Source of the DNA: Tubulanus polymorphus | Lineage: Eukaryota; Animalia; Nemertea | Direction: 5' to 3' | Assembly: GCF_964204645.1 (NCBI RefSeq) | Contig: NC_134034.1 | Span: forward strand, 1 to 64,000 | Length of the DNA: 64,000 nucleotides | Shown: positions 1,329 through 36,195 of the stretch, in pieces | Position numbering within the stretch: the first letter of the stretch is position 1 | Layout: every line of letters starts with the position of its first letter | Program-made: the position numbers and the translations under genes | Notes under the pieces: model-generated | The model's input: the letters and a program-made list of their open reading frames with translations, nothing else | Database searches by the model: none | What the model was told of the DNA's origin: nothing

Positions 1329-1420
1329 GGTCGCGCAATTAATTGTGCTGCGGATCGCGTGCATTTTGTTGTGGCTGCGGCAAACGGTTGTTTCTCGGAC
1401 GAGTGGACACGTACGACATC
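1329..1420 (-). mobile_element. Inverted 92-bp fragment of PLE ORF2 (Cys-linker region) capping copy 1
   Basis: Reverse complement of 7330-7421, joined to the pLTR via a duplicated GTACGA. Confidence 0.93.
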
Positions 1421-1768
1421 GTACGACCCGTGCACTAGTGGGGTCTCCAAACCTTCGGTTTGGTCCCCTAACCTCTATCTCTAAACCTAACCTTAGCCCG
1501 TGCCAGGTTTCCCTCGTAAATTATCTTAACTGATTAATTATTAATCATCAATCTTTTTGCAGAATCATCCTCCGTCGCCTGAAGCAGAAACCCGCTCAGA
1601 GACAGAGTACAAAACAAACTCCAAGATCACAAGCTCCACAGGAATCATCAACCTTTTATCTTTTAATTAGTTCTCTCTGCTTTACTTTGAAAACTCAATC
1701 GAAATTCAGTAAGTAAGAAGACAGACCAAATATCAGAAACAGTTAGAAAAATAAACAAAAGCGCGATA

Positions 1769-2320
1769 TCGGGAACCGAACCCTAACCGCTAGTACAGAC
1801 TGGTTGCCTGTCCCAGGACGATAGAAACCGGTAACCAGTCCACCGCTATTATCTATTTCGAAAATATGCGCCAGCACTGAGATTATATCATAGAAACACC
1901 CGAAAAGTATTAATTAATCTATTATAAATTTAGAAAGAAAGGGAATCTAGAATAGGTAAGAATATACTCAATTACTAAAACGGCGCGCCTGATCGGGACT
2001 CGAACCCGCGGCACCCGAATTAAGCTCCGGAGAATACTCGGGAACCGTACCCGCCGCTCCGAAATTAACCGCTAGTACTGACGGGTTGCCGGTGCCCCGC
2101 GTTAGATACCGGTAACCAGTCCACCGCTCTTATTTATTTTGAAAATATGCGTCGGCACTAAGATTATATCGTAGAAACATCTGAAAAGTACTATTGTATC
2201 CGTCAAAGATTCAGAATTAAAAGGAATCCAGAATAGGTAAAAAACATTTAGAATAGAACTATTCAATTACTAAACGGCGCCTGGTCGGGACTCGAACCCG
2301 CGGCACCCTAATTAACCTCC
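1769..2320. repeat. Diverged internal tandem duplication (~270-290 bp x2) in the PLE leader, each copy with a minus-strand Pol III B-box
   Basis: ~1769-2029 aligns with ~2039-2320; GGGACTCGAACCC (reverse complement GGGTTCGAGTCCC) at 1995-2007 and 2287-2299. Confidence 0.8.
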
Positions 2321-3461
2321 GTTTAATCTATAACGTTCGGTCGGGGACCTAACCCGCCACGTCCTAATTAACTATTATCGTATCTACGCGCCAACTCTTG
2401 GAACATACTCTATATAGATCCGGGTGTCAAGTTTCAAATTTCTCTAAAACAGACAGGTTATTTTCGGATAACAATTCTAATGAGATCGCTCAAAAGTATT
2501 AGTAGCTATATTCAAAAACCGCACTATAGGTTGTAGAAGTATAAGAAGTTTATAGGATAAATAATAGTCCACGGACATCAATCACTGTTCACAAGTCACT
2601 CATAATTAGTGACCGATCGGCCACCTGCGCCTCTTGACTAATTATCCGACTCAATTCTATACAAAATCGCAGTTACGACGCCTTCAAACTCATCAGTTTT
2701 TTTCAAAGAACACAGCCCAATATTCCCGATTCTAAAAGAGTTTTATATCACGTATATATTTCAACCTTCGGATTAAAGAAGAGATCATAGTGTTTTTGAA
2801 CCACTCAAACTACGCAAGCTTAAACCGATTTACTGAATACCCGCGCTCCGGTCTGAATATATTTGTCACATATTCAAGTTCACATAGCTTTACTCGATCA
2901 TAATAACTCTAAATAAGCGTAGTTTATCTAATAGAATTATATTTAAGAACTTAGAATTAAAACAGACGTATCAGTAAGACATTTCTATCAAAACTCGTCA
3001 CCCATAATTAGGGCTAATTAACCACCCGCGCTCACTCAGTAATTTAGATCTTACGGGTATAACTTCCTACTAAATCGCCGACGCCGCGCTGTCTAATTCA
3101 TCCAATCTTCGGTAGAATACCGCGTAGATATTTCAAAATCCGCTCTTAAAAGCTTTTGAATACGGAGAAAACTTGATTAACTAAGAACCGGATTTCACCA
3201 TTTACGACTATTTAGTAAACACGCGTATATCGGAATACGCCTCGGCCGCGCACCGCTAATTAACGCGTCTAAACTAATTAGGAATTAAGCAATTTTGAAA
3301 CTGAACTCGGACATATTTCGAACATTCCGGTTCACGTATATTAATAATACATATTCTAGATTTCTCTTTATAGAAAACACTCTGAGTATTTATTAGGTTA
3401 TATCGAAATAAACTTTTCAATTCTATATTAGACACGCCGTTCTTTAGATCTTTAGAACTAT

Positions 3462-3700
3462 ACATCAAAGCAAACTATTCAACAGCTAGATCAAGGGCCA
3501 TAATTAGTGCTGTTTTCTAGTCACTCTGGATCAAAGGCATAATTAGTCAGACCCCTAGTTTGTCTATTAGCTTGATCACAGAAGTACAATTAGTCTAGAT
3601 CACAAGGTCTCATATGGTCACTTAACTTCTCACTCAAATACTGTTCACTTGTTGCGCGCTGCGTGTATAAAAACCCGTGTCTAATCCTAGTTCAGCATGA
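3462..3700 (+). promoter_or_regulatory. Putative PLE Pol II promoter: TATA box (3666-3673), Inr-like TCAGCA, upstream repeated GATCA..AATTAGT modules
   Basis: TATAAAAA ~30 nt upstream of 3694-3698; the 5' end of copy 6 maps to 3698; conserved in copies 2-5. Confidence 0.65.
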
Positions 3701-5253
3701 TTCCTGCACTGACACTGACGAAGGCAACCTCGCCGAAATATCTGTCAATGGAGCGATCTACTCGAAAGAAGAAACGACCACCAGCTGAGAAGACCAGCAA
3801 GGGCGGAGGACGCCCTGAGCGACACCAGCAACCCGGAATGTCGCCGAAAAATTACTATAGAGCTCTTCAAGTGGCGCACCACCTTGCCCAGTTGAGCTCT
3901 GGTCCGAAAGCGATTCGGAGGAAGAAGGACCATCTGAAGATGTTCCTGCGGCCGGCGGCTTGCACCGAAGCAGTAACGGTGCAGCTGCACGCTGCCGCGG
4001 ACGTCTGGATGGAGACAGTTTCGAAAGAGCTGACCATCCATTACGCTGCCACATTTGTTCAGCTAATGGGTGATCCTCTGCCGGACTGTCTATCAGCACA
4101 GGATGTCGCCCTGACATGGGCCCGGAGGAATTTCGGCTCCCGTCTGAGCCCCGGAACGATCCGGCTTTTCAACATCGCGCTGGATTTGCGGTCGAAATTC
4201 CGCGGTCAGGCTCTGTCTGACAAACTCAGAAATGTCCTATCTAACCCACCTTCTTCCCCTTCTCATTTCAGGTCACACCACCAGGAGGCACCACCGGAGC
4301 CGAAGATTCGTCCGCCGCCGAGACCGAGCCGGAAGATTCGAAAGCCCGCGACGCCGAGGACGCCTGCACCAACCGCAGCCGCGCCCGCCGCGCCCACAGC
4401 GCCTCCTTCTTTTTCTGATTCCAGGTCACCGAGAAGCTACGCGGATGTCACCAGGACGCCACCAACCAAAATGGCGCCACCACCGAGAAGTCCGATGCCG
4501 ACGCCGCCGCCGCCACCAAGAAGTCCGACGCCACCGAGAAGTCCGACGCCGCCGCCTCGAAACCCGACGCCGCCGCCGCAGAGAACGCCGACCGCACCAA
4601 CCAGCAGTCCGACGCCGTCTCTCTGTTCTTCTCTTTCCAGCTCTCCGTCTCATTACAGGTCACCAGGGCGCCTACTGCCAGCGCGAAGTCCGACGCCAAC
4701 ACCGAGACCGATGGCGCCCCAGGAAGTTCGCCGTCATCCGAATACGGGTCGGAAGAAACAGGATTGGAGTCTGCCACCAACCCGGCGACCCATTCTGGTG
4801 ATTGGTGACTCAAATCTGAGTAACATCACATCAAGCCGCCGTCCGGATGACGTCCAGATCGAGAGCTTCCCCGGCTGCAAGATAGCTCATCTCGCCGACC
4901 TGATCGATGCTGTACCGGAGCGCCGAGATCGCCCGGACACGGTGATCATCAGCGTCGGAATCAACAACCGCGACAACAACTTCGAAGCGACCGCCAAGAA
5001 GACCACACAGCGCCTGATCAACGCCGCAGTCAAGAAGTATCAGCACTCGTTCGTCCACTTCGTTCAACTCAACACGACCCGCGAACACCAGCAGTTCGCC
5101 CGGAAGTTCAACGAATTCCTCGAGATTCACGACGACGTCACCGCGATACCACCCATCGATGATCGACGCTTCAGAGTTGTTGGAGACGGGATCCACTGGA
5201 ACCGTGGTACAGCTAACACCCTGCTGGACCACTGGCTCAGTGGTTTAAACTAA
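3697..5253 (+). CDS. PLE ORF1: basic N-terminus, Pro-rich RSPTPP linker, C-terminal SGNH/GDSL esterase domain
   Basis: Blocks IGDSN, FPG, VGINN and DGIH; true start may be ATG 3748 (MERSTRKKKR) just after the ribozyme. Confidence 0.9.
   Translation: MIPALTLTKATSPKYLSMERSTRKKKRPPAEKTSKGGGRPERHQQPGMSPKNYYRALQVAHHLAQLSSGPKAIRRKKDHLKMFLRPAACTEAVTVQLHAAADVWMETVSKELTIHYAATFVQLMGDPLPDCLSAQDVALTWARRNFGSRLSPGTIRLFNIALDLRSKFRGQALSDKLRNVLSNPPSSPSHFRSHHQEAPPEPKIRPPPRPSRKIRKPATPRTPAPTAAAPAAPTAPPSFSDSRSPRSYADVTRTPPTKMAPPPRSPMPTPPPPPRSPTPPRSPTPPPRNPTPPPQRTPTAPTSSPTPSLCSSLSSSPSHYRSPGRLLPARSPTPTPRPMAPQEVRRHPNTGRKKQDWSLPPTRRPILVIGDSNLSNITSSRRPDDVQIESFPGCKIAHLADLIDAVPERRDRPDTVIISVGINNRDNNFEATAKKTTQRLINAAVKKYQHSFVHFVQLNTTREHQQFARKFNEFLEIHDDVTAIPPIDDRRFRVVGDGIHWNRGTANTLLDHWLSGLN
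3710..3747 (+). ncRNA. Minimal type I hammerhead ribozyme (copy 1)
   Basis: Stem I TGACA/TGTCA, core CTGACGA(A), stem II GGC-AACCTC-GCC, GAAA, palindromic ATAT in place of stem III, predicted cut after ATC at 3742; typical PLE minimal hammerhead. Confidence 0.88.
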
Positions 5254-5285
5254 GTATTAGTGAGACCAACGGGTCCACTATTGGT
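5244..5285 (+). promoter_or_regulatory. Putative -1 programmed ribosomal frameshift signal joining ORF1 to ORF2
   Basis: T_TTA_AAC immediately before the ORF1 stop, 7-nt spacer, stem TAGTG(A)GACC/GGTCCACTA; the -1 frame is open from 5217 into the RT. Confidence 0.82.
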
Positions 5286-5408
5286 GAGTTAAATCAACCG
5301 GAATTAACCAATGCTTCTCTGATTTCTTCCATTTCCAGGTCCGACGAACACGAAGAACCGGCACCGAACCAAGCGCGACGCGATCCGGTCACCGCTCTCG
5401 GGAGCCCG

Positions 5409-7709
5409 GTGGTCAACCTCACACGTTCACTCCGCCTAAGTCCGGCGCAACATCAGCTACTCCGAAAGGGCCTCACTTATTGCCCGACTCCAAAAATCGG
5501 TTCTGATGCCGCCGCGACCGAGCGCACCAAGGGAGTGTGCCGATTCAACCGGCTAGTGAAACTCGACCATCACTTCCGTGACAAACCGGACCGCGAGGCT
5601 CCGCGTTTCCGTCTGCCCAGCAGTTGGGCTCCGGATGAAATAGAACCAGTAATCGCCGGGTTCTGCAACGACGCGCACGAATTGGCTCAACAAACCAGGG
5701 ATACGCGTCGCGTAAATGATAACCTCACTAAACAGGAACGCGAAGCCCTCCAGCAGCTGCGTGACAACACTAATATTGTCATCAAAGCCGCCGATAAGGG
5801 TTCCGCTACGGTTATCATGGACCGCGACGACTACGTCCACGAAGCCATGCGCCAACTAGCCGATCTCGAGTATTATCAGCCGCTGCAGCAACCGATCTTC
5901 GAACAGACCGGGGAAGAAATTCGCGAAATCATCGAAAATATGGCTCGACGAAAAATCATCCCGCTAAAAACCGCCGAATATCTATTACCGCCCGATAATC
6001 CGAAACAGAGGCAGTTCTATCTGCTTCCCAAAATCCATAAAGAACGCGAGAAGTGGACGGTACCCGATCGCGTACCGCCGGGGAGACCGATCGTCTCCGA
6101 CTGCGGCTCCGAAACCTACGAAATTTCGGAATGGATCGACTACTATTTGCAGCCGATCGCCCGCGGTCACCCGTCGTACGTCAAAGATACCAACCACTTT
6201 CTAGATATTTTGGCCGGTAAACAATTTAGCGCCGATGCGTTACTCGTCACCATGGACATCGATTCGCTCTACACCAACATCCCCCACGAAGAGGGTATCG
6301 CCAGCATCCGACAAGCTCTCCGAGATAACCCGAACCCGGGACGCCCGGATGCCGAGCTGCTGAAACTACTCGAAATCAGCCTGAAGAAAAATGACTTTAA
6401 CTTTAACGAAAACACATATTTACAGGTAAAAGGTACCGCAATGGGTAAGCGTTTTGCTCCTTCTTATGCCAATATCTTTGTAGCCGAATGGGAAAAAGAA
6501 GGTCTGTCCAGAAGCGAACTCCAACCATCGCTATACGCTCGGTTCATCGACGACATCTACGTAGTTTGGGAACACGGCCGCGAAACGTTGATGCAATTCA
6601 TCGACGTCCTACAAACAGTGAGCCGATCCATCAAACTCAAGTTCGAAATCAGCGACACCAGCGTCAACTTCCTGGACGTAACCACTTTCAAAGGCCCGCG
6701 ATTCGAGACAAGTGGCACAGTAGACACCAAAGTCTACTTCAAACCAACCGATTCGCATCAATTACTACATCGATCCTCGTTTCACCCTAAACACACATTT
6801 TCCGGTATAGTTAAAAGTCAAATTCTCCGGTTCCGGCGCATCTGCAATAACGATTCGGACTTACACGCAGCGTCCGGAACCGTCCTTAAAGTACTCAGAG
6901 GTCGTGGCTACAAAGACCGCGAACTGCGACACATCAAAAGCCAAGCTCTACGGCACCACGCCGAACGAGATCTACGAGAACAACAACGGGCCGACGAAGC
7001 GCCGAAAAAGCGTTTACCGCTTATCTTACCTCACTCCGAAGCCAACCGAACCCTAGCCCGTAACATCCGAACCAGATTTACGGAACTGGCTACGGCCACC
7101 GGCCGGTCTGACGAGGTAACCACGGTCACCGCCTACACCAAGCACAAGAGTCTCAAAGATCTCCTAACTTCGTCGCAGCTCAAACCCACGGAGCCACCCC
7201 CTCCCCGAGTCCCCTCTTCACCGCATCGTAACAGAAATACTTCCGTTGTTTCCAATTCTTCTATTTCCAGGTCTACTCAAAGAACTCCGTCAACCCGACG
7301 TCGAGGCACCGAGAAATGCAGAACACCGAGATGTCGTACGTGTCCACTCGTCCGAGAAACAACCGTTTGCCGCAGCCACAACAAAATGCACGCGATCCGC
7401 AGCACAATTAATTGCGCGACCCGTGAAATTGTATACTGCATCGAATGCACCAAGTGCAACATGCTGTACGTCGGCCAAACCGGAATGTCTCTACGAGAAC
7501 GCGTCACTCATCACGTCTCACGCATCAGAACGAAGAATTCGACTCCAGTCTCGGACCACTTCAACCAAGTCGACCACACCCGCGAACACTTTCGGGTGTA
7601 CGGTCTCCAACACCTACCAGGCTCCACGAGACCGATCCGCGAAGCAGCCGAACAAGACTGGATACGACGACTCGACACGAACACGCCCCGAGGCATGAAC
7701 GTCCCGTAG
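5409..7709 (+). CDS. PLE ORF2: reverse transcriptase + Cys linker + GIY-YIG endonuclease (no AUG at its start; frame open from 5217)
   Basis: ADKG, DIDSLYTNI, GTAMG, RFIDD, FLDV; CxxxxCxxC linker; IVY..C..C..YVGQT..R..H..H..E..N. Confidence 0.97.
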   Translation: MVNLTRSLRLSPAQHQLLRKGLTYCPTPKIGSDAAATERTKGVCRFNRLVKLDHHFRDKPDREAPRFRLPSSWAPDEIEPVIAGFCNDAHELAQQTRDTRRVNDNLTKQEREALQQLRDNTNIVIKAADKGSATVIMDRDDYVHEAMRQLADLEYYQPLQQPIFEQTGEEIREIIENMARRKIIPLKTAEYLLPPDNPKQRQFYLLPKIHKEREKWTVPDRVPPGRPIVSDCGSETYEISEWIDYYLQPIARGHPSYVKDTNHFLDILAGKQFSADALLVTMDIDSLYTNIPHEEGIASIRQALRDNPNPGRPDAELLKLLEISLKKNDFNFNENTYLQVKGTAMGKRFAPSYANIFVAEWEKEGLSRSELQPSLYARFIDDIYVVWEHGRETLMQFIDVLQTVSRSIKLKFEISDTSVNFLDVTTFKGPRFETSGTVDTKVYFKPTDSHQLLHRSSFHPKHTFSGIVKSQILRFRRICNNDSDLHAASGTVLKVLRGRGYKDRELRHIKSQALRHHAERDLREQQRADEAPKKRLPLILPHSEANRTLARNIRTRFTELATATGRSDEVTTVTAYTKHKSLKDLLTSSQLKPTEPPPPRVPSSPHRNRNTSVVSNSSISRSTQRTPSTRRRGTEKCRTPRCRTCPLVRETTVCRSHNKMHAIRSTINCATREIVYCIECTKCNMLYVGQTGMSLRERVTHHVSRIRTKNSTPVSDHFNQVDHTREHFRVYGLQHLPGSTRPIREAAEQDWIRRLDTNTPRGMNVP

Positions 7710-8650
7710 ACCGCCTCACTACAACAATTAACTCTCACTACTTTTTTACAGGGATAACCCGCTGCCCGTGCACTAGTGGGGTCTCCAAACCTTCGGTTTG
7801 GTCCCCCAACCTCTATCTCTAAACCTAACCCTAACCCTAACCCTACTCGATCCTAATAACTCTAAATAAGCGTAGTTTATCTAATAGAATTATATTTAAG
7901 AACTTAGAATTAAAACAGACGTATTAGTAAGACATTTCTATCAAAACTCGTCACCCATAATTAGGGCTAATTAACCACCCGCGCTCACTCAGTAATTTAG
8001 ATCTTACGGGTTATAACTTCCTACTAAATCGCCGACGCCGCGCTGTCTAATTCATCCAATTTTCGGTAGAATACCGCGTAGATATTTCAAAATCCGCTCT
8101 TAAAAGCTTTAGAATACGGAGAAAACTTGATTAACTAAGAACCGGATTTCACCATTTACGACTATTTAGTAAACACGCGTTTATCGGAATACGCCTCGGC
8201 CGCGCACCGCTAATTAACGCGCCTAAACTAATTAGGAATTAAGCAATTTTGAAACTGAACTCGGACATATTTCGAACATTCCGGTTCACGTATATTAATA
8301 ATACATATTCTAGATTTCTCTTTATAGAAAACACTTTGAGTATTTATTAGGTTATATCGAAATAAACTTTTCAATTCTATATTAGACACGCCGTTCTTTA
8401 GATCTTTAGAACTATACATCAAAGCAAACTATTCAACAGCTAGATCAAGGGCCATAATTAGTGCTGTTTTCTAGTCACTCTGGATCAAAGGCATAATTAG
8501 TCAGACCCCTAGTTTGTCTATTAGCTTGATCACAGAAGTACAATTAGTCTAGATCACAAGGTCTCATATGGTCACTTAACTTCTAACTCGAATACTGTTC
8601 ACTTGTTGCGCGCTGCGTGTATAAAAACCCGTGTCTAATCCTAGTTCAGC

Positions 8651-10207
8651 ATGATTCCTGCACTGACACTGACGAAGGCAACCTCGCCGAAATATCTGTC
8701 AATGGAGCGATCTACTCGAAAGAAGAAACGACCACCAGCTGAGAAGACCAGCAAGGGCGGAGGACGCCCTGAGCGACACCAGCAACCCGGGATGTCGCCG
8801 AAAAATTACTATAGAGCTCTTCAAGTGGCGCACCACCTTGCCCAGTTGAGCTCTGGTCCGAAAGCGATTCGGAGGAAGAAGGACCATCTGAAGATGTTCC
8901 TGCGGCCGGCGGCTTGCACCGAAGCAGTAACGGTGCAGCTGCACGCTGCCGCGGACGTCTGGATGGAGACAGTTTCGAAAGAGCTGACCATCCATTACGC
9001 TGCCACATTTGTTCAGCTAATGGGTGATCCTCTGCCGGACTGTCTATCAGCACAGGATGTCGCCCTGACATGGGCCCGGAGGAATTTCGGCTCCCGTCTG
9101 AGCCCCGGAACGATCCGGCTTTTCAACATCGCGCTGGATTTGCGGTCGAAATTCCGCGGTCAGGCTCTGTCTGACAAACTCAGAAATGTCCTATCTAACC
9201 CACCTTCTTCCCCTTCTCATTTCAGGTCACACCACCAGGAGGCACCCACGGAACCGAAGATTCGTCCGCCGCCGAGACCGAGCCGGAAGATTCGAAAGCC
9301 CGCGACGCCGAGGACGCCTGCACCAACCGCAGCCGCGCCCGCCGCGCCCACAGCGCCTCCTTCTTTTTCTGATTCCAGGTCACCGAGAAGCTACGCGGAT
9401 GTCACCAGGACGCCACCAACCAGAATGGCGCCACCACCGAGAAGTCCGATGCCGACGCCGCCGCCGCCACCAAGAAGTCCGACGCCACCGAGAAGTCCGA
9501 CGCCGCCGCCTCGAAACCCGACGCCGCCGCCGCAGAGAACGCCGACCGCACCAACCAGCAGTCCGACGCCGTCTCTCTCTTCTTCTCTTTCCAGCTCTCC
9601 GTCTCATTACAGGTCACCAGGGCGCCTACTGCCAGCGCGAAGTCCGACGCCAACACCGAGACCGATGGCGCCCCAGGAAGTTCGCCGTCATCCGAATACG
9701 GGTCGGAAGAAACAGGATTGGAGTCTGCCACCAACCCGGCGACCCATTCTGGTGATTGGTGACTCAAATCTGAGTAACATCACATCAAGCCGCCGTCCGG
9801 ATGACGTCCAGATCGAGAGCTTCCCCGGCTGCAAGATAGCTCATCTCGCCGACCTGATCGATGCTGTACCGGAGCGCCGAGATCGCCCGGATACGGTGAT
9901 CATCAGCGTCGGAATCAACAACCGCGACAACAACTTCGAAGCGACCGCCAGGAAGACCACACAGCGCCTGATCAACGCCGCAGTCAAGAAGTATCAGCAC
10001 TCGTTCGTCCACTTCGTTCAACTCAACACGACCCGCGAACACCAGCAGTTCGCCCGGAAGTTCAACGAATTCCTCGAGATTCACGACGACGTCACCGCGA
10101 TACCACCCATCGATGATCGACGCTTCAGAGTTGTTGGAGACGGGATCCACTGGAACCGTGGTACAGCTAACACCCTGCTGGACCACTGGCTCAGTGGTTT
10201 AAACTAA
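8651..10207 (+). CDS. PLE ORF1 (SGNH esterase), copy 2
   Basis: Near-identical to 3697-5253. Confidence 0.88.
   Translation: MIPALTLTKATSPKYLSMERSTRKKKRPPAEKTSKGGGRPERHQQPGMSPKNYYRALQVAHHLAQLSSGPKAIRRKKDHLKMFLRPAACTEAVTVQLHAAADVWMETVSKELTIHYAATFVQLMGDPLPDCLSAQDVALTWARRNFGSRLSPGTIRLFNIALDLRSKFRGQALSDKLRNVLSNPPSSPSHFRSHHQEAPTEPKIRPPPRPSRKIRKPATPRTPAPTAAAPAAPTAPPSFSDSRSPRSYADVTRTPPTRMAPPPRSPMPTPPPPPRSPTPPRSPTPPPRNPTPPPQRTPTAPTSSPTPSLSSSLSSSPSHYRSPGRLLPARSPTPTPRPMAPQEVRRHPNTGRKKQDWSLPPTRRPILVIGDSNLSNITSSRRPDDVQIESFPGCKIAHLADLIDAVPERRDRPDTVIISVGINNRDNNFEATARKTTQRLINAAVKKYQHSFVHFVQLNTTREHQQFARKFNEFLEIHDDVTAIPPIDDRRFRVVGDGIHWNRGTANTLLDHWLSGLN
8664..8701 (+). ncRNA. Hammerhead ribozyme, copy 2
   Basis: Identical to 3710-3747. 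Confidence 0.85.
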
Positions 10208-10401
10208 GTATTAGTGAGACCAACGGGTCCACTATTGGTGAGTTAAATCAACCGGAATTAACCAATGCTTCTCTGATTTCTTCCATTTCCAGGTCCGACG
10301 AACACGAAGAACCGGCACCAAACCAAGCGCGACGCGATCCGGTCACCGCTCTCGGGAGCCCGGTGGTCAACCTCACACGTTCACTCCGCCTAACCCTAAC
10401 C

Positions 10402-24096: not shown

Positions 24097-24251
24097 GTAT
24101 TAGTGAGACCAACGGGCCCACTATTGGTGAGTTAAATCAACCGGAATTAACCAATGCTTCTCTGATTTCTTCCATTTCCAGGTCCGACGAACACGAAGAA
24201 CCGGCACCGAACCAAGCGCGACGCGATCCGGTCACCGCTCTCGGGAGCCCG

Positions 24252-26552: not shown

Positions 26553-27493
26553 ACCGCCTCACTACAACAATTAACTCTCACTACTTTTTTACAGGGATAA
26601 CCCGCTGCCCGTGCACTAGTGGGGTCTCCAAACCTTCGGTTTGGTCCCCCAACCTCTATCTCTAAACCTAACCCTAACCCTAACCCTACTCGATCCTAAT
26701 AACTCTAAATAAGCGTAGTTTATCTAATAGAATTATATTTAAGAACTTAGAATTAAAACAGACGTATTAGTAAGACATTTCTATCAAAACTCGTCACCCA
26801 TAATTAGGGCTAATTAACCACCCGCGCTCACTCAGTAATTTAGATCTTACGGGTTATAACTTCCTACTAAATCGCCGACGCCGCGCTGTCTAATTCATCC
26901 AATTTTCGGTAGAATACCGCGTAGATATTTCAAAATCCGCTCTTAAAAGCTTTAGAATACGGAGAAAACTTGATTAACTAAGAACCGGATTTCACCATTT
27001 ACGACTATTTAGTAAACACGCGTTTATCGGAATACGCCTCGGCCGCGCACCGCTAATTAACGCGCCTAAACTAATTAGGAATTAAGCAATTTTGAAACTG
27101 AACTCGGACATATTTCGAACATTCCGGTTCACGTATATTAATAATACATATTCTAGATTTCTCTTTATAGAAAACACTTTGAGTATTTATTAGGTTATAT
27201 CGAAATAAACTTTTCAATTCTATATTAGACACGCCGTTCTTTAGATCTTTAGAACTATACATCAAAGCAAACTATTCAACAGCTAGATCAAGGGCCATAA
27301 TTAGTGCTGTTTTCTAGTCACTCTGGATCAAAGGCATAATTAGTCAGACCCCTAGTTTGTCTATTAGCTTGATCACAGAAGTACAATTAGTCTAGATCAC
27401 AAGGTCTCATATGGTCACTTAACTTCTAACTCGAATACTGTTCACTTGTTGCGCGCTGCGTGTATAAAAACCCGTGTCTAATCCTAGTTCAGC

Positions 27494-29050
27494 ATGATTC
27501 CTGCACTGACACTGACGAAGGCAACCTCGCCGAAATATCTGTCAATGGAGCGATCTACTCGAAAGAAGAAACGACCACCAGCTGAGAAGACCAGCAAGGG
27601 CGGAGGACGCCCTGAGCGACACCAGCAACCCGGGATGTCGCCGAAAAATTACTATAGAGCTCTTCAAGTGGCGCACCACCTTGCCCAGTTGAGCTCTGGT
27701 CCGAAAGCGATTCGGAGGAAGAAGGACCATCTGAAGATGTTCCTGCGGCCGGCGGCTTGCACCGAAGCAGTAACGGTGCAGCTGCACGCTGCCGCGGACG
27801 TCTGGATGGAGACAGTTTCGAAAGAGCTGACCATCCATTACGCTGCCACATTTGTTCAGCTAATGGGTGATCCTCTGCCGGACTGTCTATCAGCACAGGA
27901 TGTCGCCCTGACATGGGCCCGGAGGAATTTCGGCTCCCGTCTGAGCCCCGGAACGATCCGGCTTTTCAACATCGCGCTGGATTTGCGGTCGAAATTCCGC
28001 GGTCAGGCTCTGTCTGACAAACTCAGAAATGTCCTATCTAACCCACCTTCTTCCCCTTCTCATTTCAGGTCACACCACCAGGAGGCACCCACGGAGCCGA
28101 AGATTCGTCCGCCGCCGAGACCGAGCCGGAAGATTCGAAAGCCCGCGACGCCGAGGACGCCTGCACCAACCGCAGCCGCGCCCGCCGCGCCCACAGCGCC
28201 TCCTTCTTTTTCTGATTCCAGGTCACCGAGAAGCTACGCGGATGTCACCAGGACGCCACCAACCAGAATGGCGCCACCACCGAGAAGTCCGATGCCGACG
28301 CCGCCGCCGCCACCAAGAAGTCCGACGCCACCGAGAAGTCCGACGCCGCCGCCTCGAAACCCGACGCCGCCGCCGCAGAGAACGCCGACCGCACCAACCA
28401 GCAGTCCGACGCCGTCTCTCTCTTCTTCTCTTTCCAGCTCTCCGTCTCATTACAGGTCACCAGGGCGCCTACTGCCAGCGCGAAGTCCGACGCCAACACC
28501 GAGACCGATGGCGCCCCAGGAAGTTCGCCGTCATCCGAATACGGGTCGGAAGAAACAGGATTGGAGTCTGCCACCAACCCGGCGACCCATTCTGGTGATT
28601 GGTGACTCAAATCTGAGTAACATCACATCAAGCCGCCGTCCGGATGACGTCCAGATCGAGAGCTTCCCCGGCTGCAAGATAGCTCATCTCGCCGACCTGA
28701 TCGATGCTGTACCGGAGCGCCGAGATCGCCCGGATACGGTGATCATCAGCGTCGGAATCAACAACCGCGACAACAACTTCGAAGCGACCGCCAGGAAGAC
28801 CACACAGCGCCTGATCAACGCCGCAGTCAAGAAGTATCAGCACTCGTTCGTCCACTTCGTTCAACTCAACACGACCCGCGAACACCAGCAGTTCGCCCGG
28901 AAGTTCAACGAATTCCTCGAGATTCACGACGACGTCACCGCGATACCACCCATCGATGATCGACGCTTCAGAGTTGTTGGAGACGGGATCCACTGGAACC
29001 GTGGTACAGCTAACACCCTGCTGGACCACTGGCTCAGTGGTTTAAACTAA
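27494..29050 (+). CDS. PLE ORF1 (SGNH esterase), copy 5
   Basis: 518 aa; hammerhead at 27507-27544; slippery site 29041-29047. Confidence 0.88.
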   Translation: MIPALTLTKATSPKYLSMERSTRKKKRPPAEKTSKGGGRPERHQQPGMSPKNYYRALQVAHHLAQLSSGPKAIRRKKDHLKMFLRPAACTEAVTVQLHAAADVWMETVSKELTIHYAATFVQLMGDPLPDCLSAQDVALTWARRNFGSRLSPGTIRLFNIALDLRSKFRGQALSDKLRNVLSNPPSSPSHFRSHHQEAPTEPKIRPPPRPSRKIRKPATPRTPAPTAAAPAAPTAPPSFSDSRSPRSYADVTRTPPTRMAPPPRSPMPTPPPPPRSPTPPRSPTPPPRNPTPPPQRTPTAPTSSPTPSLSSSLSSSPSHYRSPGRLLPARSPTPTPRPMAPQEVRRHPNTGRKKQDWSLPPTRRPILVIGDSNLSNITSSRRPDDVQIESFPGCKIAHLADLIDAVPERRDRPDTVIISVGINNRDNNFEATARKTTQRLINAAVKKYQHSFVHFVQLNTTREHQQFARKFNEFLEIHDDVTAIPPIDDRRFRVVGDGIHWNRGTANTLLDHWLSGLN

Positions 29051-29205
29051 GTATTAGTGAGACCAACGGGTCCACTATTGGTGAGTTAAATCAACCGGAA
29101 TTAACCAATGCTTCTCTGATTTCTTCCATTTCCAGGTCCGACGAACACGAAGAACCGGCACCAAACCAAGCGCGACGCGATCCGGTCACCGCTCTCGGGA
29201 GCCCG

Positions 29206-31506
29206 GTGGTCAACCTCACACGTTCACTCCGCCTAAGTCCGGCGCAACATCAGCTACTCCGAAAGGGCCTCACTTATTGCCCGACTCCAAAAATCGGTTC
29301 TGATGCCGCCGCGACCGAGCGCACCAAGGGAGTGTGCCGATTCAACCGGCTAGTGAAACTCGACCATCACTTCCGAGACAAACCGGACCGCGAGGCTCCG
29401 CGTTTCCGTCTGCCCAGCAGTTGGGCTCCGGATGAAATAGAACCAATAATCGCCGGGTTCTGCAACGACGCGCACGAATTGGCTCAACAAACCAGGGATA
29501 CGCGTCGCGTAAATGATAACCTCACTAAACAGGAACGCGAAGCCCTCCAGCAGCTGCGTGACAACACTAATATTGTCATCAAAGCCGCCGATAAGGGTTC
29601 CGCTACGGTTATCATGGACCGCGACGACTACGTCCACGAAGCCATGCGCCAACTAGCCGATCTCGAGTATTATCAGCCGCTGCAGCAACCGATCTTCGAA
29701 CAGACCGGGGAAGAAATTCGCGAAATCATCGAAAATATGGCTCGACGAAAAATCATCCCGCTAAAAACCGCCGAATATCTATTACCGCCCGATAATCCGA
29801 AACAGAGGCAGTTCTATCTGCTTCCCAAAATCCATAAAGAACGCGAGAAGTGGACGGTACCCGATCGCGTACCGCCGGGGAGACCGATCGTCTCCGACTG
29901 CGGCTCCGAAACCTACGAAATTTCGGAATGGATCGACTACTATTTGCAGCCGATCGCCCGCGGTCACCCGTCGTACGTCAAGGATACCAACCACTTTCTA
30001 GATATTTTGGCCGGTAAACAATTTAGCGCCGATGCGTTACTCGTCACCATGGACATCGATTCGCTCTACACCAACATCCCCCACGAAGAGGGTATCGCCA
30101 GCATCCGACAAGCTCTCCGAGATAACCCGAACCCGGGACGCCCGGATGCCGAGCTGCTGAAACTACTCGAAATCAGCCTGAAGAAAAATGACTTTAACTT
30201 TAACGAAAACACATATTTACAGGTAAAAGGTACCGCAATGGGTAAGCGTTTTGCTCCTTCTTATGCCAATATCTTTGTAGCCGAATGGGAAAAAGAAGGT
30301 CTGTCCAGAAGCGAACTCCAACCATCGCTATACGCTCGGTTCATCGACGACATCTACATAGTTTGGGAACACGGCCGCGAAACGTTGATGCAATTCATCG
30401 ACGTCCTACAAACAGTGAGCCGATCCATCAAACTCAAGTTCGAAATCAGCGACACCAGCGTCAACTTCCTGGACGTAACCACTTTCAAAGGCCCGCGATT
30501 CGAGACAAGTGGCACAGTAGACACCAAAGTCTACTTCAAACCAACCGATTCGCATCAATTACTACATCGATCCTCGTTTCACCCTAAACACACATTTTCC
30601 GGTATAGTTAAAAGTCAAATTCTCCGGTTCCGGCGCATCTGCAATAACGATTCGGACTTACACGCAGCGTCCGGAACCGTCCTTAAAGTACTCAGAGGTC
30701 GTGGCTACAAAGACCGCGAACTGCGACACATCAAAAGCCAAGCTCTACGGCACCACGCCGAACGAGATCTACGAGAACAACAACGGGCCGACGAACCGCC
30801 GAAAAAGCGTTTACCGCTTATCTTACCTCACTCCGAAGCCAACCGAACCCTAGCCCGTAACATCCGAACCAGATTTACGGAACTGGCTACGGCCACCGGC
30901 CGGTCTGACGAGGTAACCACGGTCACCGCCTACACCAAGCACAAGAGTCTCAAAGATCTCCTAACTTCGTCGCAGCTCAAACCCACGGAGCCACCCCCTC
31001 CCCGAGTTCCCTCTTCACCGCATCGTAACAGAAATACTTCCGTTGTTTCCAATTCTTCTATTTCCAGGTCTACTCAAAGAACTCCGTCAACCCGACGTCG
31101 AGGCACCGAGAAATGCAGAACACCGAGATGTCGTACGTGTCCACTCGTCCGAGAAACAACCGTTTGCCGCAGCCACAACAAAATGCACGCGATCCGCAGC
31201 ACAATTAATTGCGCGACCCGTGAAATTGTATACTGCATCGAATGCACCAAGTGCAACATGCTGTACGTCGGCCAAACCGGAATGTCTCTACGAGAACGCG
31301 TCACTCATCACGTCTCACGCATCAGAACGAAGAATTCGACTCCAGTCTCGGACCACTTCAACCAAGTCGACCACACCCGCGAACACTTTCGGGTGTACGG
31401 TCTCCAACACCTACCAGGCTCCACGAGACCGATCCGCGAAGCAGCCGAACAAGACTGGATACGACGACTCGACACGAACACGCCCCGAGGCATGAACGTC
31501 CCGTAG
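29206..31506 (+). CDS. PLE ORF2 RT + GIY-YIG, copy 5
   Basis: Intact. Confidence 0.96.
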   Translation: MVNLTRSLRLSPAQHQLLRKGLTYCPTPKIGSDAAATERTKGVCRFNRLVKLDHHFRDKPDREAPRFRLPSSWAPDEIEPIIAGFCNDAHELAQQTRDTRRVNDNLTKQEREALQQLRDNTNIVIKAADKGSATVIMDRDDYVHEAMRQLADLEYYQPLQQPIFEQTGEEIREIIENMARRKIIPLKTAEYLLPPDNPKQRQFYLLPKIHKEREKWTVPDRVPPGRPIVSDCGSETYEISEWIDYYLQPIARGHPSYVKDTNHFLDILAGKQFSADALLVTMDIDSLYTNIPHEEGIASIRQALRDNPNPGRPDAELLKLLEISLKKNDFNFNENTYLQVKGTAMGKRFAPSYANIFVAEWEKEGLSRSELQPSLYARFIDDIYIVWEHGRETLMQFIDVLQTVSRSIKLKFEISDTSVNFLDVTTFKGPRFETSGTVDTKVYFKPTDSHQLLHRSSFHPKHTFSGIVKSQILRFRRICNNDSDLHAASGTVLKVLRGRGYKDRELRHIKSQALRHHAERDLREQQRADEPPKKRLPLILPHSEANRTLARNIRTRFTELATATGRSDEVTTVTAYTKHKSLKDLLTSSQLKPTEPPPPRVPSSPHRNRNTSVVSNSSISRSTQRTPSTRRRGTEKCRTPRCRTCPLVRETTVCRSHNKMHAIRSTINCATREIVYCIECTKCNMLYVGQTGMSLRERVTHHVSRIRTKNSTPVSDHFNQVDHTREHFRVYGLQHLPGSTRPIREAAEQDWIRRLDTNTPRGMNVP

Positions 31507-31636
31507 ACCGCCTCACTACAACAATTAACTCTCACTACTTTTTTACAGGGATAACCCGCTGCCCGTGCACTAGTGGGGTCTCCAAACCTTCGGTTTGGTC
31601 CCCTAACCTCTATCTCTAAACCTAACCCTAACCCTC

Positions 31637-33195
31637 TTGATTCCTGCACTGACACTGACGAAGGCAACCTCGCCGAAATATCTGTCAATGGAGCGATCTA
31701 CTCGAAAGAAGAAACGACCACCAGCTGAGAAGACCAGCAAGGGCGGAGGACGCCCTGAGCGACACCAGCAACCCGGGATGTCGCCGAAAAATTACTATAG
31801 AGCTCTTCAAGTGGCGCACCACCTTGCCCAGTTGAGCTCTGGTCCGAAAGCGATTCGGAGGAAGAAGGACCATCTGAAGATGTTCCTGCGGCCGGCGGCT
31901 TGCACCGAAGCAGTAACGGTGCAGCTGCACGCTGCCGCGGACGTCTGGATGGAGACAGTTTCGAAAGAGCTGACCATCCATTACGCTGCCACATTTGTTC
32001 AGCTAATGGGTGATCCTCTGCCGGACTGTCTATCAGCACAGGATGTCGCCCTGACATGGGCCCGGAGGAATTTCGGCTCCCGTCTGAGCCCCGGAACGAT
32101 CCGGCTTTTCAACATCGCGCTGGATTTGCGGTCGAAATTCCGCGGTCAGGCTCTGTCTGACAAACTCAGAAATGTCCTATCTAACCCACCTTCTTCCCCT
32201 TCTCATTTCAGGTCACACCACCAGGAGGCACCCACGGAGCCGAAGATTCGTCCGCCGCCGAGACCGAGCCGGAAGATTCGAAAGCCCGCGACGCCGAGGA
32301 CGCCTGCACCAACCGCAGCCGCGCCCGCCGCGCCCACAGCGCCTCCATCTTTTTCTGATTCCAGGTCACCGAGAAGCTACGCGGATGTCACCAGGACGCC
32401 ACCAACCAGAATGGCGCCACCACCGAGAAGTCCGATGCCGACGCCGCCGCCGCCACCAAGAAGTCAGACGCCACCGAGAAGTCCGACGCCGCCGCCTCGA
32501 AACCCGACGCCGCCGCCGCCGCAGAGAACGCCGACCGCACCAACCAGCAGTCCGACGCCGTCTCTCTCTTCTTCTCTTTCCAGCTCTCCGTCTCATTACA
32601 GGTCACAGGGCGCCTACTGCCAGCGCGAAGTCCGACGCCAACACCGAGACCGATGGCGCCCCAGGAAGTTCGCCGTCATCCGAATACGGGTCGGAAGAAA
32701 CAGGATTGGAGTCTGCCACCAACCCGGCGACCCATTCTGGTGATTGGTGACTCAAATCTGAGTAACATCACATCAAGCCGCCGTCCGGATGACGTCCAGA
32801 TCGAGAGCTTCCCCGGCTGCAAGATAGCTCATCTCGCCGACCTGATCGATGCTGTACCGGAGCGCCGAGATCGCCCGGATACGGTGATCATCAGCGTCGG
32901 AATCAACAACCGCGACAACAACTTCGAAGCGACCGCCAGGAAGACCACACAGCGCCTGATCAACGCCGCAGTCAAGAAGTATCAGCACTCGTTCGTCCAC
33001 TTCGTTCAACTCAACACGACCCGCGAACACCAGCAGTTCGCCCGGAAGTTCAACGAATTCCTCGAGATTCACGACGACGTCACCGCGATACCACCCATCG
33101 ATGATCGACGCTTCAGAGTTGTTGGAGACGGGATCCACTGGAACCGTGGTACAGCTAACACCCTGCTGGACCACTGGCTCAGTGGTTTAAACTAA
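31637..33195 (+). pseudogene. PLE ORF1 copy 6, frameshifted
   Basis: 1-bp deletion (GGTCACAGGG vs GGTCACCAGGG, ~32606) splits ORF1; could also be a sequencing error. Confidence 0.75.
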
Positions 33196-35772
33196 GTATT
33201 AGTGAGACCAACGGGTCCACTATTGGTGAGTTAAATCAACCGGAATTAACCAATGCTTCTCTGATTTCTTCCATTTCCAGGTCCGACGAACACGAAGAAC
33301 CGGCACCAAACCAAGCGCGACGCGATCCGGTCACCGCTCTCGGGAGCCCGGTGGTCAACCTCACACGTTCACTCCGCCTAAGTCCGGCGCAACATCAGCT
33401 ACTCCGAAAGGGCCTCACTTATTGCCCGACTCCAAAAATCGGTTCTGATGCCGCCGCGACCGAGCGCACCAAGGGAGTGTGCCGATTCAACCGGCTAGTG
33501 AAACTCGACCATCACTTCCGAGACAAACCGGACCGCGAGGCTCCGCGTTTCCGTCTGCCCAGCAGTTGGGCTCCGGATGAAATAGAACCAGTAATCGCCG
33601 GGTTCTGCAACGACGCGCACGAATTGGCTCAACAAACCAGGGATACGCGTCGCGTAAATGATAACCTCACTAAACAGGAACGCGAAGCCCTCCAGCAGCT
33701 GCGTGACAACACTAATATTGTCATCAAAGCCGCCGATAAGGGTTCCGCTACGGTTATCATGGACCGCGACGACTACGTCCACGAAGCCATGCGCCAACTA
33801 GCCGATCTCGAGTATTATCAGCCGCTGCAGCAACCGATCTTCGAACAGACCGGGGAAGAAATTCGCGAAATCATCGAAAATATGGCTCGACGAAAAATCA
33901 TCCCGCTAAAAACCGCCGAATATCTATTACCGCCCGATAATCCGAAACAGAGGCAGTTCTATCTGCTTCCCAAAATCCATAAAGAACGCGAGAAGTGGAC
34001 GGTACCCGATCGCGTACCGCCGGGGAGACCGATCGTCTCCGACTGCGGCTCCGAAACCTACGAAATTTCGGAATGGATCGACTACTATTTGCAGCCGATC
34101 GCCCGCGGTCACCCGTCGTACGTCAAAGATACCAACCACTTTCTAGATATTTTGGCCGGTAAACAATTTAGCGCCGATGCGTTACTCGTCACCATGGACA
34201 TCGATTCGCTCTACACCAACATCCCCCACGAAGAGGGTATCGCCAGCATCCGACAAGCTCTCCGAGATAACCCGAACCCGGGACGCCCGGATGCCGAGCT
34301 GCTGAAACTACTCGAAATCAGCCTGAAGAAAAATGACTTTAACTTTAACGAAAACACATATTTACAGGTAAAAGGTACCGCAATGGGTAAGCGTTTTGCT
34401 CCTTCTTATGCCAATATCTTTGTAGCCGAATGGGAAAAAGAAGGTCTGTCCAGAAGCGAACTCCAACCATCGCTATACGCTCGGTTCATCGACGACATCT
34501 ACATAGTTTGGGAACACGGCCGCGAAACGTTGATGCAATTCATCGACGTCCTACAAACAGTGAGCCGATCCATCAAACTCAAGTTCGAAATCAGCGACAC
34601 CAGCGTCAACTTCCTGGACGTAACCACCTTCAAAGGCCCGCGATTCGAGACAAGTGGCACAGTAGACACCAAAGTCTACTTCAAACCAACCGATTCGCAT
34701 CAATTACTACATCGATCCTCGTTTCACCCTAAACACACATTTTCCGGTATAGTTAAAAGTCAAATTCTCCGGTTCCGGCGCATCTGCAATAACGATTCGG
34801 ACTTACACGCAGCGTCCGGAACCGTCCTTAAAGTACTCAGAGGTCGTGGCTACAAAGACCGCGAACTGCGACACATCAAAAGCCAAGCTCTACGGCACCA
34901 CGCCGAACGAGATCTACGAGAACAACAACGGGCCGACGAACCGCCGAAAAAGCGTTTACCGCTTATCTTACCTCACTCCGAAGCCAACCGAACCCTAGCC
35001 CGTAATATCCGAACCAGATTTACGGAACTGGCTACGGCCACCGGCCGGTCTGACGAGGTAACCACGGTCACCGCCTACACCAAGCACAAGAGTCTCAAAG
35101 ATCTCCTAACTTCGTCGCAGCTCAAACCCACGGAGCCACCCCCTCCCCGAGTCCCCTCTTCACCGCATCGTAACAGAAATACTTCCGTTGTTTCCAATTC
35201 TTCTATTTCCAGGTCTACTCAAAGAACTCCGTCAACCCGACGTCGAGGCACCGAGAAATGCAGAACACCGAGATGTCGTACGTGTCCACTCGTCCGAGAA
35301 ACAACCGTTTGCCGCAGCCACAACAAAATGCACGCGATCCGCAGCACAATTAATTGCGCGACCCGTGAAATTGTATACTGCATCGAATGCACCAAGTGCA
35401 ACATGCTGTACGTCGGCCAAACCGGAATGTCTCTACGAGAACGCGTCACTCATCACGTCTCACGCATCAGAACGAAGAATTCGACTCCAGTCTCGGACCA
35501 CTTCAACCAAGTCGACCACACCCGCGAACACTTTCGGGTGTACGGTCTCCAACACCTACCAGGCTCCACGAGACCGATCCGCGAAGCAGCCGAACAAGAC
35601 TGGATACGACGACTCGACACGAACACGCCCCGAGGCATGAACGTCCCGTAGACCGCCTCACTACAACAATTAACTCTCACTACTTTTTTACAGGGATAAC
35701 CCGCTGCCCGTGCACTAGTGGGGTCTCCAAACCTTCGGTTTGGTCCCCTAACCTCTATCTCTAAACCTAACC
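31638..35772 (+). mobile_element. PLE copy 6, starting at about the predicted transcription start
   Basis: 5' end equivalent to 3698; retains hammerhead at 31650-31687; lacks TATA and upstream leader. Confidence 0.95.
33351..35651 (+). CDS. PLE ORF2 RT + GIY-YIG, copy 6
   Basis: Intact reading frame. Confidence 0.93.
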   Translation: MVNLTRSLRLSPAQHQLLRKGLTYCPTPKIGSDAAATERTKGVCRFNRLVKLDHHFRDKPDREAPRFRLPSSWAPDEIEPVIAGFCNDAHELAQQTRDTRRVNDNLTKQEREALQQLRDNTNIVIKAADKGSATVIMDRDDYVHEAMRQLADLEYYQPLQQPIFEQTGEEIREIIENMARRKIIPLKTAEYLLPPDNPKQRQFYLLPKIHKEREKWTVPDRVPPGRPIVSDCGSETYEISEWIDYYLQPIARGHPSYVKDTNHFLDILAGKQFSADALLVTMDIDSLYTNIPHEEGIASIRQALRDNPNPGRPDAELLKLLEISLKKNDFNFNENTYLQVKGTAMGKRFAPSYANIFVAEWEKEGLSRSELQPSLYARFIDDIYIVWEHGRETLMQFIDVLQTVSRSIKLKFEISDTSVNFLDVTTFKGPRFETSGTVDTKVYFKPTDSHQLLHRSSFHPKHTFSGIVKSQILRFRRICNNDSDLHAASGTVLKVLRGRGYKDRELRHIKSQALRHHAERDLREQQRADEPPKKRLPLILPHSEANRTLARNIRTRFTELATATGRSDEVTTVTAYTKHKSLKDLLTSSQLKPTEPPPPRVPSSPHRNRNTSVVSNSSISRSTQRTPSTRRRGTEKCRTPRCRTCPLVRETTVCRSHNKMHAIRSTINCATREIVYCIECTKCNMLYVGQTGMSLRERVTHHVSRIRTKNSTPVSDHFNQVDHTREHFRVYGLQHLPGSTRPIREAAEQDWIRRLDTNTPRGMNVP

Positions 35773-35786
35773 CTAACCCTAACCCT

Positions 35787-36024
35787 AGTCCCGGTCTAGG
35801 TGGTGGACTGTGCTTTTCCCGATGCCCCTAACTCTAATGCCTTCCGACAGGTGGGAGTTAGCCTGATTTCCCGCTGCCCGTGCTCTAGTGGGGAACTGAA
35901 AAAGAAATTAATTAATACATCTCGATTAACAGTCTCGGGGGTTAATCTGAAGAACACACTTGTCATATAATTAATATTCAAATTCAAAAATTGGTTCCCC
36001 TAACCTCTATCTCTATACCTAACC
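35787..36024 (+). mobile_element. 5'-truncated single family A unit (most proximal module)
   Basis: Matches the 353-bp unit from within the B box to CCTAACC. Confidence 0.9.
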
Positions 36025-36195
36025 CTAACCCTAACCCTGAGACCCTAACCCTAACCCTGAGACCCTAACCCTAACCCTGAGACCCTAACCCTAAGACCCT
36101 AACCCTAAAACCCTAACCCTAAAACCCTAACCCTAACCCAAGACCCTAACCCTAAGACCCTAACCCTAAGACCCTAACCCTAAGACCCTAACCCC
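36018..36195. repeat. Proximal telomeric/variant telomeric tract
   Basis: CCCTAA interspersed with CCCTGAGA, CCCTAAGA, CCCTAAAA and CCCAAGA variants; marks the border with unique DNA. Confidence 0.92.

Follow-up and report, generated by a model that had tools for sequence, protein, structure and literature searches.

A Penelope-like element with a fused endonuclease, and its tRNA-derived companions, at chromosome ends of the nemertean Tubulanus polymorphus

The reverse transcriptases (RTs) of Penelope-like elements (PLEs) are the closest retroelement relatives of telomerase. The stretch considered here, namely the first 64 kb of contig C10 (G000:C10:1-64000; hereafter the window) in the 268-Mb genome of the nemertean Tubulanus polymorphus, begins with a telomere, and the ~35 kb that follow (1329-36195) hold six copies of a PLE and three stretches of short tRNA-derived units resembling short interspersed nuclear elements (SINEs). 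This PLE encodes a GIY-YIG endonuclease fused to its RT. How does such an element come to occupy a chromosome end, when the literature from 2013 to 2026 follows the rule that endonuclease-positive PLEs are intrachromosomal and endonuclease-negative PLEs telomeric (PMC3846280, PMC6431247, PMC8557442, PMC13159263)? An initial annotation of the stretch had likewise described telomeric PLEs as lacking a fused endonuclease, a generalization that the literature keeps (PMC8557442, PMC6431247, PMC13159263). We argue below that these sequences very probably represent an active, telomere-specialised PLE family, which is accompanied in Tubulanus polymorphus by tRNA-derived non-autonomous partners.

Organization of the arrays and their distribution in the genome

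The layout of the chromosome end was established by a telomere scan, self-BLAST and direct reading of the sequence. All PLE and SINE copies of the array lie on the + strand, and hence their 5' ends face the telomere; the arrangement of PLE copies and tRNA-derived units proposed in the initial annotation was thus reproduced. The contig starts with a terminal (CCCTAA)n telomere (1-1328, + strand), followed by a 92-nt inverted fragment of open reading frame (ORF) 2 (1329-1420, - strand), which is the exact reverse complement of 7330-7421 and caps the outermost PLE copy. Further inward lie PLE copy 1 in a long form (1427-7838); copy 2 (7844-10393), whose 3' end is cut at a CCTAA internal to ORF2; a SINE-A array of 15.8 seamless, 100% identical units of 353 bp (10402-15976); an internal telomeric tract of ~17 repeats (15975-16081); about two 337-bp units of SINE-B, 80% identical to SINE-A (16082-16736); and a block formed by PLE copies 3-6 (16767-35787). 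Both ORFs are intact in copies 3 (16767-21724; ORF1 at 17574-19139), 4 (21725-26681; ORF1 at 22531-24096) and 5 (26687-31635; ORF1 at 27494-29050). Copy 6 (31638-35787) has an intact ORF2 and a broken ORF1: it starts at TGATTCC, the presumed transcription start, has no ATG and carries a 1-nt deletion in ORF1. The innermost insertion is a partial SINE-A (35787-36024; unit positions 58-295), bordered by degenerate telomere-like repeats (36023-36195) that probably mark the old subtelomere boundary. G+C content drops from ~50% to ~38% at the inner edge of the array, and the remainder of the window inward of 36195 gave no telomeric or PLE match.

Short telomeric runs are present at the non-seamless junctions of the array; the joints between SINE-A units are seamless. 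One of the earlier statements stood only in part. The PLE copies share 98.8-99.7% mutual identity; however, the near-identical intact ORFs ascribed to them are found in copies 1, 3, 4 and 5, and neither in the truncated copy 2 nor in copy 6.

Copy 1 consists, in order, of the tail fragment of an upstream unit (1427-1499), a non-coding spacer of 2.2 kb with a TATAAAA near 3667, ORF1, ORF2, a 3' module and a telomeric linker. It is collinear at 99.4% with seamless 6.35-kb units on contigs C3, C4 and C54, and such units also occur on C63. Segment 1329-2890 had been regarded as a separate, third tRNA-headed family; the collinearity of 1427-2890 with the seamless PLE units on C4, C54 and C63 rules this out and makes the latter part the 5' extension of copy 1. 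The 5' end of copy 2 coincides with those of copies 3, 4 and 5 and of the short form of copy 1, and the size of the element ranges from 4 to 6.4 kb. Within the spacer, two antisense fragments resembling a tRNA T-arm (CGGGACTCGAACCCGCGG) are found at 1985-2012 and 2278-2305, in a pair of direct repeats of ~280 bp.

The same organization recurs across the genome. A survey of matches recovered at least 47 essentially identical ORF2 matches, nearly all within the first or last tens of kilobases of contigs. They include the starts of C4, C8 and C10, the end of C7, and small contigs built of such arrays. The PLE lies on the + strand at left ends and on the - strand at right ends; SINE-A and SINE-B obey the same rule, with a small number of older interstitial copies (C4:9.66 Mb, C5:16.62 Mb, C6:11.83 Mb). 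The array architecture is repeated on at least 10 contigs. The telomere association put forward earlier therefore extends to the genome as a whole, with nearly all copies at contig ends and telomere-directed, and with at least two full interstitial exceptions; the opposite picture, of most copies at random non-telomeric sites, is not what these matches present.

The junctions are equally regular. After the 3' tail one of three outcomes is seen: a seamless run-on, a linker of 9-27 nt (mode 14-16 nt) followed by the next element, or a tract of 48-277 nt. Whereas PLE 3' ends always fall at the tail, the 5' ends fall at no fewer than 10 different positions, and SINE arrays on four contigs share the same final 3' nucleotide and differ in their 5' starts. 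Such a pattern is the hallmark of 5'-truncated products of target-primed reverse transcription. For copy 2, whose 3' end falls where ORF2 reads CCTAA, priming apparently took place at an internal CCUAA.

The system is not strictly telomere-only, because at least two full copies are interstitial: C3:16163921-16173600 (16.17 Mb) and C2:16492569-16498300 (16.49 Mb; loci L037/L031 and L032/L039). Both are young and lie near the middle of contigs of 28-32 Mb; each has unique DNA on its 5' side and, on its 3' side, 1.5 kb of a degenerate telomere-like satellite that is the same in both. The C3 copy has a possible 14-bp target duplication. Endonuclease-mediated insertion may account for these two copies, or else they may be what is left of internalised ends; the tail matches at C2:15.13 Mb hint at additional interstitial ones.

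Several observations speak for recent activity. ORF2 was free of stops and indels in 30 of 30 copies, whose 38 variant sites comprise 22 synonymous and 16 non-synonymous ones. An independent Illumina whole-genome sample from a separate study, with ~7x genome coverage, held the element at depths rising from ~210 in the 5' spacer through ~500 to ~1100 at the 3' end, which corresponds to ~30 copies increasing to ~150; 69% of the reads were at least 99% identical to the element. With its copies young and intact, the PLE family looks active. Telomerase is evidently retained alongside it, as the initial annotation had supposed, given that a telomerase RNA-binding domain is encoded on C5.

Coding capacity, predicted RNA signals and the non-autonomous partners

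ORF2 (5244-7709, + strand) is read in the -1 frame from a slip site at the end of ORF1, this frame being open over 5217-7709. Its RT was detected by Pfam RVT_1 at 1.5e-7, has the DKG and FIDD motifs, and can be assigned to the PLE type. Homologues of ORF2 number 1407, mostly with DUF8422 and HTH_animal domains and with or without GIY-YIG; the best protein match is an NCBI model from Tubulanus polymorphus itself (97% identity).

The C-terminal part of ORF2 (7317-7706, + strand) comprises a CX4CxxC linker and a GIY-YIG endonuclease with an internal CCHH motif. Pfam GIY-YIG scored 24.2 bits on the C-terminal 202 residues (cut-off 22.6), and the domain retains all residues that are invariant in ten relatives (Y, C, C, Y, G, R, H, H, E, N), among them two cysteines between GIY and YIG and the active-site R, H, E and N. 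The linker reads C-RTPR-C-RT-C (~7317-7343), and its spacing is identical in relatives P0003, P0010, P0012, P0017, P0089 and P0061; in an unlabelled tree the Tubulanus element falls inside the linker-bearing group. With a Pfam score above the cut-off and its catalytic and zinc-binding residues all present, the apparently intact C-terminal GIY-YIG with a Neptune-type Cys linker that had been read from the sequence was borne out. The endonuclease is under constraint, because its core is 69% identical to that of the 61%-identical relative P0002, as against 60% for the remaining ORF2. A separate peculiarity concerns the thumb-end motif (..AY.K.K.LKD.L.SS.L), which precedes the endonuclease in Tubulanus, P0002 and the group-I relatives P0029, P0036, P0051 and P0066, and follows it in the other linker-bearing relatives (alignment of P0003, P0010, P0012, P0017, P0061 and P0089). 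As the motif precedes or follows the endonuclease depending on the relative, the position of the endonuclease is permuted within the clade.

Three parts make up ORF1 (3697-5253, + strand; 518 aa): an N-terminal region that is conserved, a linker rich in proline, and an SGNH esterase domain at the C-terminus. Pfam gave no match to ORF1 above its cut-off (Lipase_GDSL_2 reached only 16.8 bits), and an Atlas search with the N-terminal region returned no match. The last 168 residues, however, align with seven relatives in which G-S-N, G, G-N and D-x-x-H are invariant (G20 S22 N23, G43, G71 N73, D147 H150; blocks I, II, III and V). An AlphaFold model of this domain (pLDDT, a per-residue confidence score, of 88.1) has a flavodoxin-like fold, and Foldseek matched it at probability 1.0 to PAF-AH Ib, OatA and GDSL lipases; the matches include the esterase of ZfL2-1 ORF1 (4c1b) at 21-22% identity. 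It is these invariant residues and fold matches that identify the domain, and they agree with the esterase ORF1 of the initial annotation. In the Pro-rich linker (4501, 4567), in-frame CGC insertions vary among copies and in the independent read set.

ORF1 ends in GGU UUA AAC UAA, in which a slippery heptamer U_UUA_AAC (5244-5250, + strand) stands in the ORF1 phase with the TAA stop directly after it, as suits a -1 slip. We predict that ORF1 and ORF2 are joined by -1 frameshifting at this site. The frameshift had been proposed before, and in keeping with it ORF1 terminates with an in-phase U_UUA_AAC in six of the relatives (38-61% identity) for which the end of ORF1 was read, namely L043, L045, L047, L048, L050 and L051. 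In L044 the ORF1 end has U_UUU_UUA in place of U_UUA_AAC, and in copies 3 and 4 of the window the heptamer is U_UUA_AAU.

Near the 5' end of ORF1, a structure descriptor detected a candidate minimal type I hammerhead (3710-3747, + strand), which the minimum free energy fold reproduces at the same positions. Its parts are helix I UGACA/UGUCA (5 bp), a core CUGACGA with an extra A, helix II GGC/GCC (3 bp) and GAAA; helix III is replaced by a palindromic AUAU. Cleavage is predicted after C3742, with an in-frame AUG at 3748. This was the one descriptor match in 6.5 kb, against 0.003 expected by chance in a shuffle control, and the identical variant lies 5' of ORF1 in the 49%-identical relative L045, where Rfam HH9 matches weakly (19 bits, E = 1). 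The hammerhead named in the initial annotation gains from this match and its recurrence in L045; yet the Rfam hammerhead models had no match in the window at E up to 10, on which account we rate this predicted motif as likely but unproven.

The autonomous and non-autonomous elements are tied together by their 3' module (7758-7843, + strand, in copy 1), which consists of a conserved box, a UUCG-capped hairpin, a CCCC(U/C)AACC...CUAAACCUAACC tail and a 16-nt telomeric linker, and which is common to the PLE, SINE-A, SINE-B and the relative L043. Between the SINEs and the PLE, 23 of 24 positions of the box and ~30 of 32 of the tail are identical, in accord with the pairing suggested at the outset. 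At its 3' end the PLE RNA would carry the box, then the hairpin, and last a CCUAACC run able to pair with the G strand of the telomere. As a side observation, the box (7758-7781; GCC[C/A]GTGC), 5' of the hairpin, has a direct repeat just after the priming run (1492-1506), with an equivalent in the SINEs (e.g. 10879-10902 versus 11035-11049); it shifts in parallel across the PLE, SINE-A and SINE-B, and a similar GCCAGTGC box occurs in L045 and L052.

The Rfam tRNA model matched all 17 of 17 SINE units at 43-47 bits (for example 10740-10812 in SINE-A), and a T4 run follows the tRNA-like segment. ARAGORN called no tRNA in the window, and we therefore speak of tRNA-like segments and not of tRNA genes. 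In the longest copies (SINE-A on C34, SINE-B in the window) this part begins 30-40 nt inside the unit, such that the units contain a tRNA-like segment throughout without being tRNA-headed in the strict sense first proposed. The SINE-A array in the window is truncated within the tRNA at its 5' end and terminates exactly at the priming tail. SINE-A and SINE-B are, by their shared module, best described as tRNA-derived non-autonomous partners of the PLE. We also considered whether the units are retrozymes and rejected this: in unit dimers a relaxed descriptor found no complete hammerhead, only a CUGAAGA half-core.

Relatives in other samples and comparison with known systems

Relatives of 45-61% identity in four other samples have the same two-ORF, endonuclease-bearing organization and end in (CCCTAA)n, and every relative that was fetched has an esterase ORF1 together with an ORF2 of the Tubulanus element's family. 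Pfam confirmed GIY-YIG in five relatives, and the CX4CxxC linker was absent from the group-I relatives tested. Besides Tubulanus, four lineages (L043, L050, L054/L055 and L052/L053) have (CCCTAA)n at their ends, oriented alike. In the last of these, L052/L053, copies stand head to tail in an array that begins 22 kb and stops 48 kb into a 345-kb contig, and every junction has telomeric repeats. The L048 lineage ends in a telomere-like satellite, and further lineages end in unrelated sequence or a (CTA)n microsatellite. In the unlabelled tree, lineages joined to telomeric repeats occur at scattered positions among the linker-bearing ones.

Two further variants concern ORF1. In L048, L049, L054 and L056 it is longer (734-860 aa) and has a NADAR domain (PF08719) besides the esterase. 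In the fish Astyanax mexicanus (L046; CM033914.1:24667-36166) there is an ORF1 homologue that matches 90% of ORF1 at 27% identity and has TTTAAAC or TTTAAAT at its end. It is located 25-36 kb from the chromosome start, with (CCCTAA) runs upstream and in the same orientation; no ORF2 was detectable downstream of it.

Among known systems, the closest in habit are Athena and the Terminons of bdelloid rotifers and Coprina of fungi and other organisms. Like them, the Tubulanus element has a PLE RT, a 3' stretch able to pair with the telomeric G strand, terminal arrays of copies placed head to tail, 5' truncations capped by short telomeric repeats, and a two-ORF layout with a frameshift, which is predicted here. 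GDSL/SGNH esterase ORFs are present in some Athena and Terminon families (PMC6431247, PMC5408684, PMC8557442), and Terminons can have stand-alone GIY-YIG and GDSL ORFs (PMC6431247, PMC5408684); the ingredients of the Tubulanus system are thus not wholly unprecedented. What sets it apart is that its GIY-YIG is fused to the RT, whereas Terminons have at most stand-alone endonucleases. Further, Athena and the Terminons have a 3' hammerhead beside the telomere-complementary run, in contrast to the plain UUCG hairpin fold of Tubulanus, whose sole hammerhead-like motif lies at the 5' end of ORF1 (3710-3747). Its 4-6.4 kb also compare with up to 40 kb in this group.

With Neptune-type PLEs the Tubulanus element has in common a C-terminal GIY-YIG with internal CCHH and an upstream CX2-5CxxC linker, and a partial-tandem organization; the candidate hammerhead would be a further likeness, being of the minimal type I that they possess. 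For the Neptune-type linker a role in steering insertion to simple repeats has been suggested (PMC8557442). Canonical endonuclease-positive PLEs, in published accounts, have one ORF and lie within chromosomes (PMC8557442, PMC6431247). In contrast, the Tubulanus element has an esterase ORF1, a -1 frameshift site and a telomeric-repeat target; the likeness is one of domain features.

More distant parallels can also be drawn. Like TRAS and SART of Bombyx, non-LTR retrotransposons specific to telomeric repeats (PMC7265360), the element encodes an endonuclease and sits in fixed orientation in telomeric repeats that the host keeps; those elements, however, combine an APE-type endonuclease with the RT of a long interspersed nuclear element (LINE) and a poly(A) tail (PMC7265360). 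The relation of SINE-A and SINE-B to the PLE is that of a LINE/SINE pair, with short non-coding units that join a tRNA-derived region to the autonomous partner's 3' recognition module, except that here the partner is a PLE. Their seamless tandem units recall metazoan retrozyme arrays, which are thought to be mobilised by PLEs (PMC7761336), but they have no complete hammerhead. Finally, the SGNH esterase at the C-terminus of ORF1 has counterparts in the LINEs CR1, L2 and RTEX (ZfL2-1, PDB 4c1b), although PAF-AH Ib and OatA and not 4c1b are its best structural matches. The combination was not known to have been described, and full-text searches of the literature with PLE, telomere, esterase and nemertean terms found no published description of it.

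A model for array growth, its alternatives and its implications

The intact ORF2 in all 30 copies, the shared 3' module and the end-directed arrays together favour the active, telomere-specific autonomous/non-autonomous system that the initial annotation had envisaged. In the mechanism we propose, a telomeric TTAGGG 3'-OH would anneal to the CCUAACC run and prime reverse transcription, so that the cDNA would extend the G strand, often being cut short at its 5' end. The 3'-OH might be that of the natural G overhang or come from a G strand nicked by the element's own endonuclease, which would supply a 3'-OH within duplex telomeric repeats and telomere-like interstitial repeats. The new end would be capped with telomeric repeats, telomerase staying the capping enzyme, and repeated rounds would build the array. 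Seamless multimers (6.35-kb PLE, 353-bp SINE) would arise from multimeric or circular RNA templates, and the constant 14-16-nt linker could, speculatively, reflect template jumping onto an RNA 3' end of fixed length.

A number of observations weigh against this model or parts of it. That the endonuclease is used at telomeres is something we infer from the sequence, and the interstitial copy on C2 has no target duplication, its 5' side abutting unique DNA. The modal linker of 14-16 nt is not simply predicted by addition to a long telomere. No copy starts at the predicted hammerhead cleavage site, the recurrent 5' ends being 2893 and 3697, and the fold 3' of the slip site was no better than that of shuffled sequence (z = +0.49), for which reason we make no claim of a pseudoknot. 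None of the sequencing runs recorded as RNA contained the element; its transcript ends, the cleavage by the hammerhead and the frameshift are accordingly predictions from the DNA. Moreover, identical junctions recur, four in the window and three at constant spacing on C65, and because of this a part of each array may have come from unequal recombination.

The last point leads to the possibility that the arrays grew mainly by unequal crossing-over, break-induced replication or copying akin to alternative lengthening of telomeres from a few founder insertions. The exact junction repeats (5' end 2893 four times in the window; 3697 three times on C65 with a 4150-bp spacing) fit such growth, as do units that are 100% identical within and between arrays. 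Against it stand the truncation of 5' ends at numerous points while the 3' ends invariably coincide with the priming tail, the SINE arrays on four contigs with one 3' nucleotide and differing 5' starts, the 5'-to-3' gradient in copy number that is typical of retroposition, and the bias of variants toward synonymous changes; we regard recombination as an improbable main source. A little less doubtful, though still unlikely in our estimation, is an Athena-like attachment to ends only, in which a free G overhang is always used and the fused endonuclease is idle at telomeres, being retained for occasional interstitial transposition or some other step, for instance the processing of the second strand. 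PLEs that lack an endonuclease do arrive at this architecture (PMC8557442, PMC3846280), every terminal array has the orientation that overhang priming predicts, and the internal CCUAA priming of copy 2 fits simple annealing. Set against this, the endonuclease is conserved at least as well as the RT between two telomere-ending lineages, all 30 copies have kept it intact, the telomeric habit is found in no fewer than five endonuclease-positive lineages, and the interstitial copies lie in telomere-like repeats where no free end is expected.

The remaining explanations fare far worse. Arrays at many ends, always in the extending orientation, might bring to mind a domesticated telomere maintenance that has replaced telomerase, like HeT-A, TART and TAHRE in Drosophila. 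This we rejected as very unlikely: beyond the array the chromosome ends in 1.3 kb of perfect repeats, long internal tracts occur as well, the telomerase RNA-binding domain is encoded on C5, and some of the assembled ends examined bear no array. An assembly artefact, with repeats collapsed, expanded or chimerically joined at the contig end, is scarcely credible. Perfectly identical tandem units are hard to assemble, and the runs that best match the stretch may be the assembly's own data; but no fewer than 10 contigs show the architecture, as do unrelated assemblies from other organisms, and the independent sample contains the same sequence at ~30-150 copies.

A telomere-specialised, endonuclease-bearing PLE family in Tubulanus, together with the at least four related lineages, breaks the rule that links endonuclease and chromosomal niche, in that a fused, conserved endonuclease goes with telomere attachment. 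It is conceivable, albeit somewhat against the odds, that two-ORF endonuclease-bearing PLEs with an SGNH ORF1 (in some with NADAR), U_UUA_AAC and CX4CxxC-GIY-YIG form a widespread undescribed clade for which the telomeric repeat is an ancestral or recurrent niche. Their RNA would present a CCUAACC run, resembling a telomerase template, beside a boundary hairpin, and their RT could lengthen chromosome ends and, through template jumping or rolling-circle copying, produce seamless multimers. If true, such a clade would bridge endonuclease-positive PLEs, Athena-like end-extenders and telomerase. The system also makes several questions testable: whether the telomere targeting of PLEs depends on annealing of RNA to DNA, on the endonuclease or on the two together; how readily a retroelement switches between an interstitial and a terminal niche; and whether a PLE RT copies multimeric or circular templates. 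It furthermore provides a defined pair of autonomous PLE and non-autonomous SINEs, in a telomerase-positive animal in which tens of kilobases at many chromosome ends are built of retroelements.

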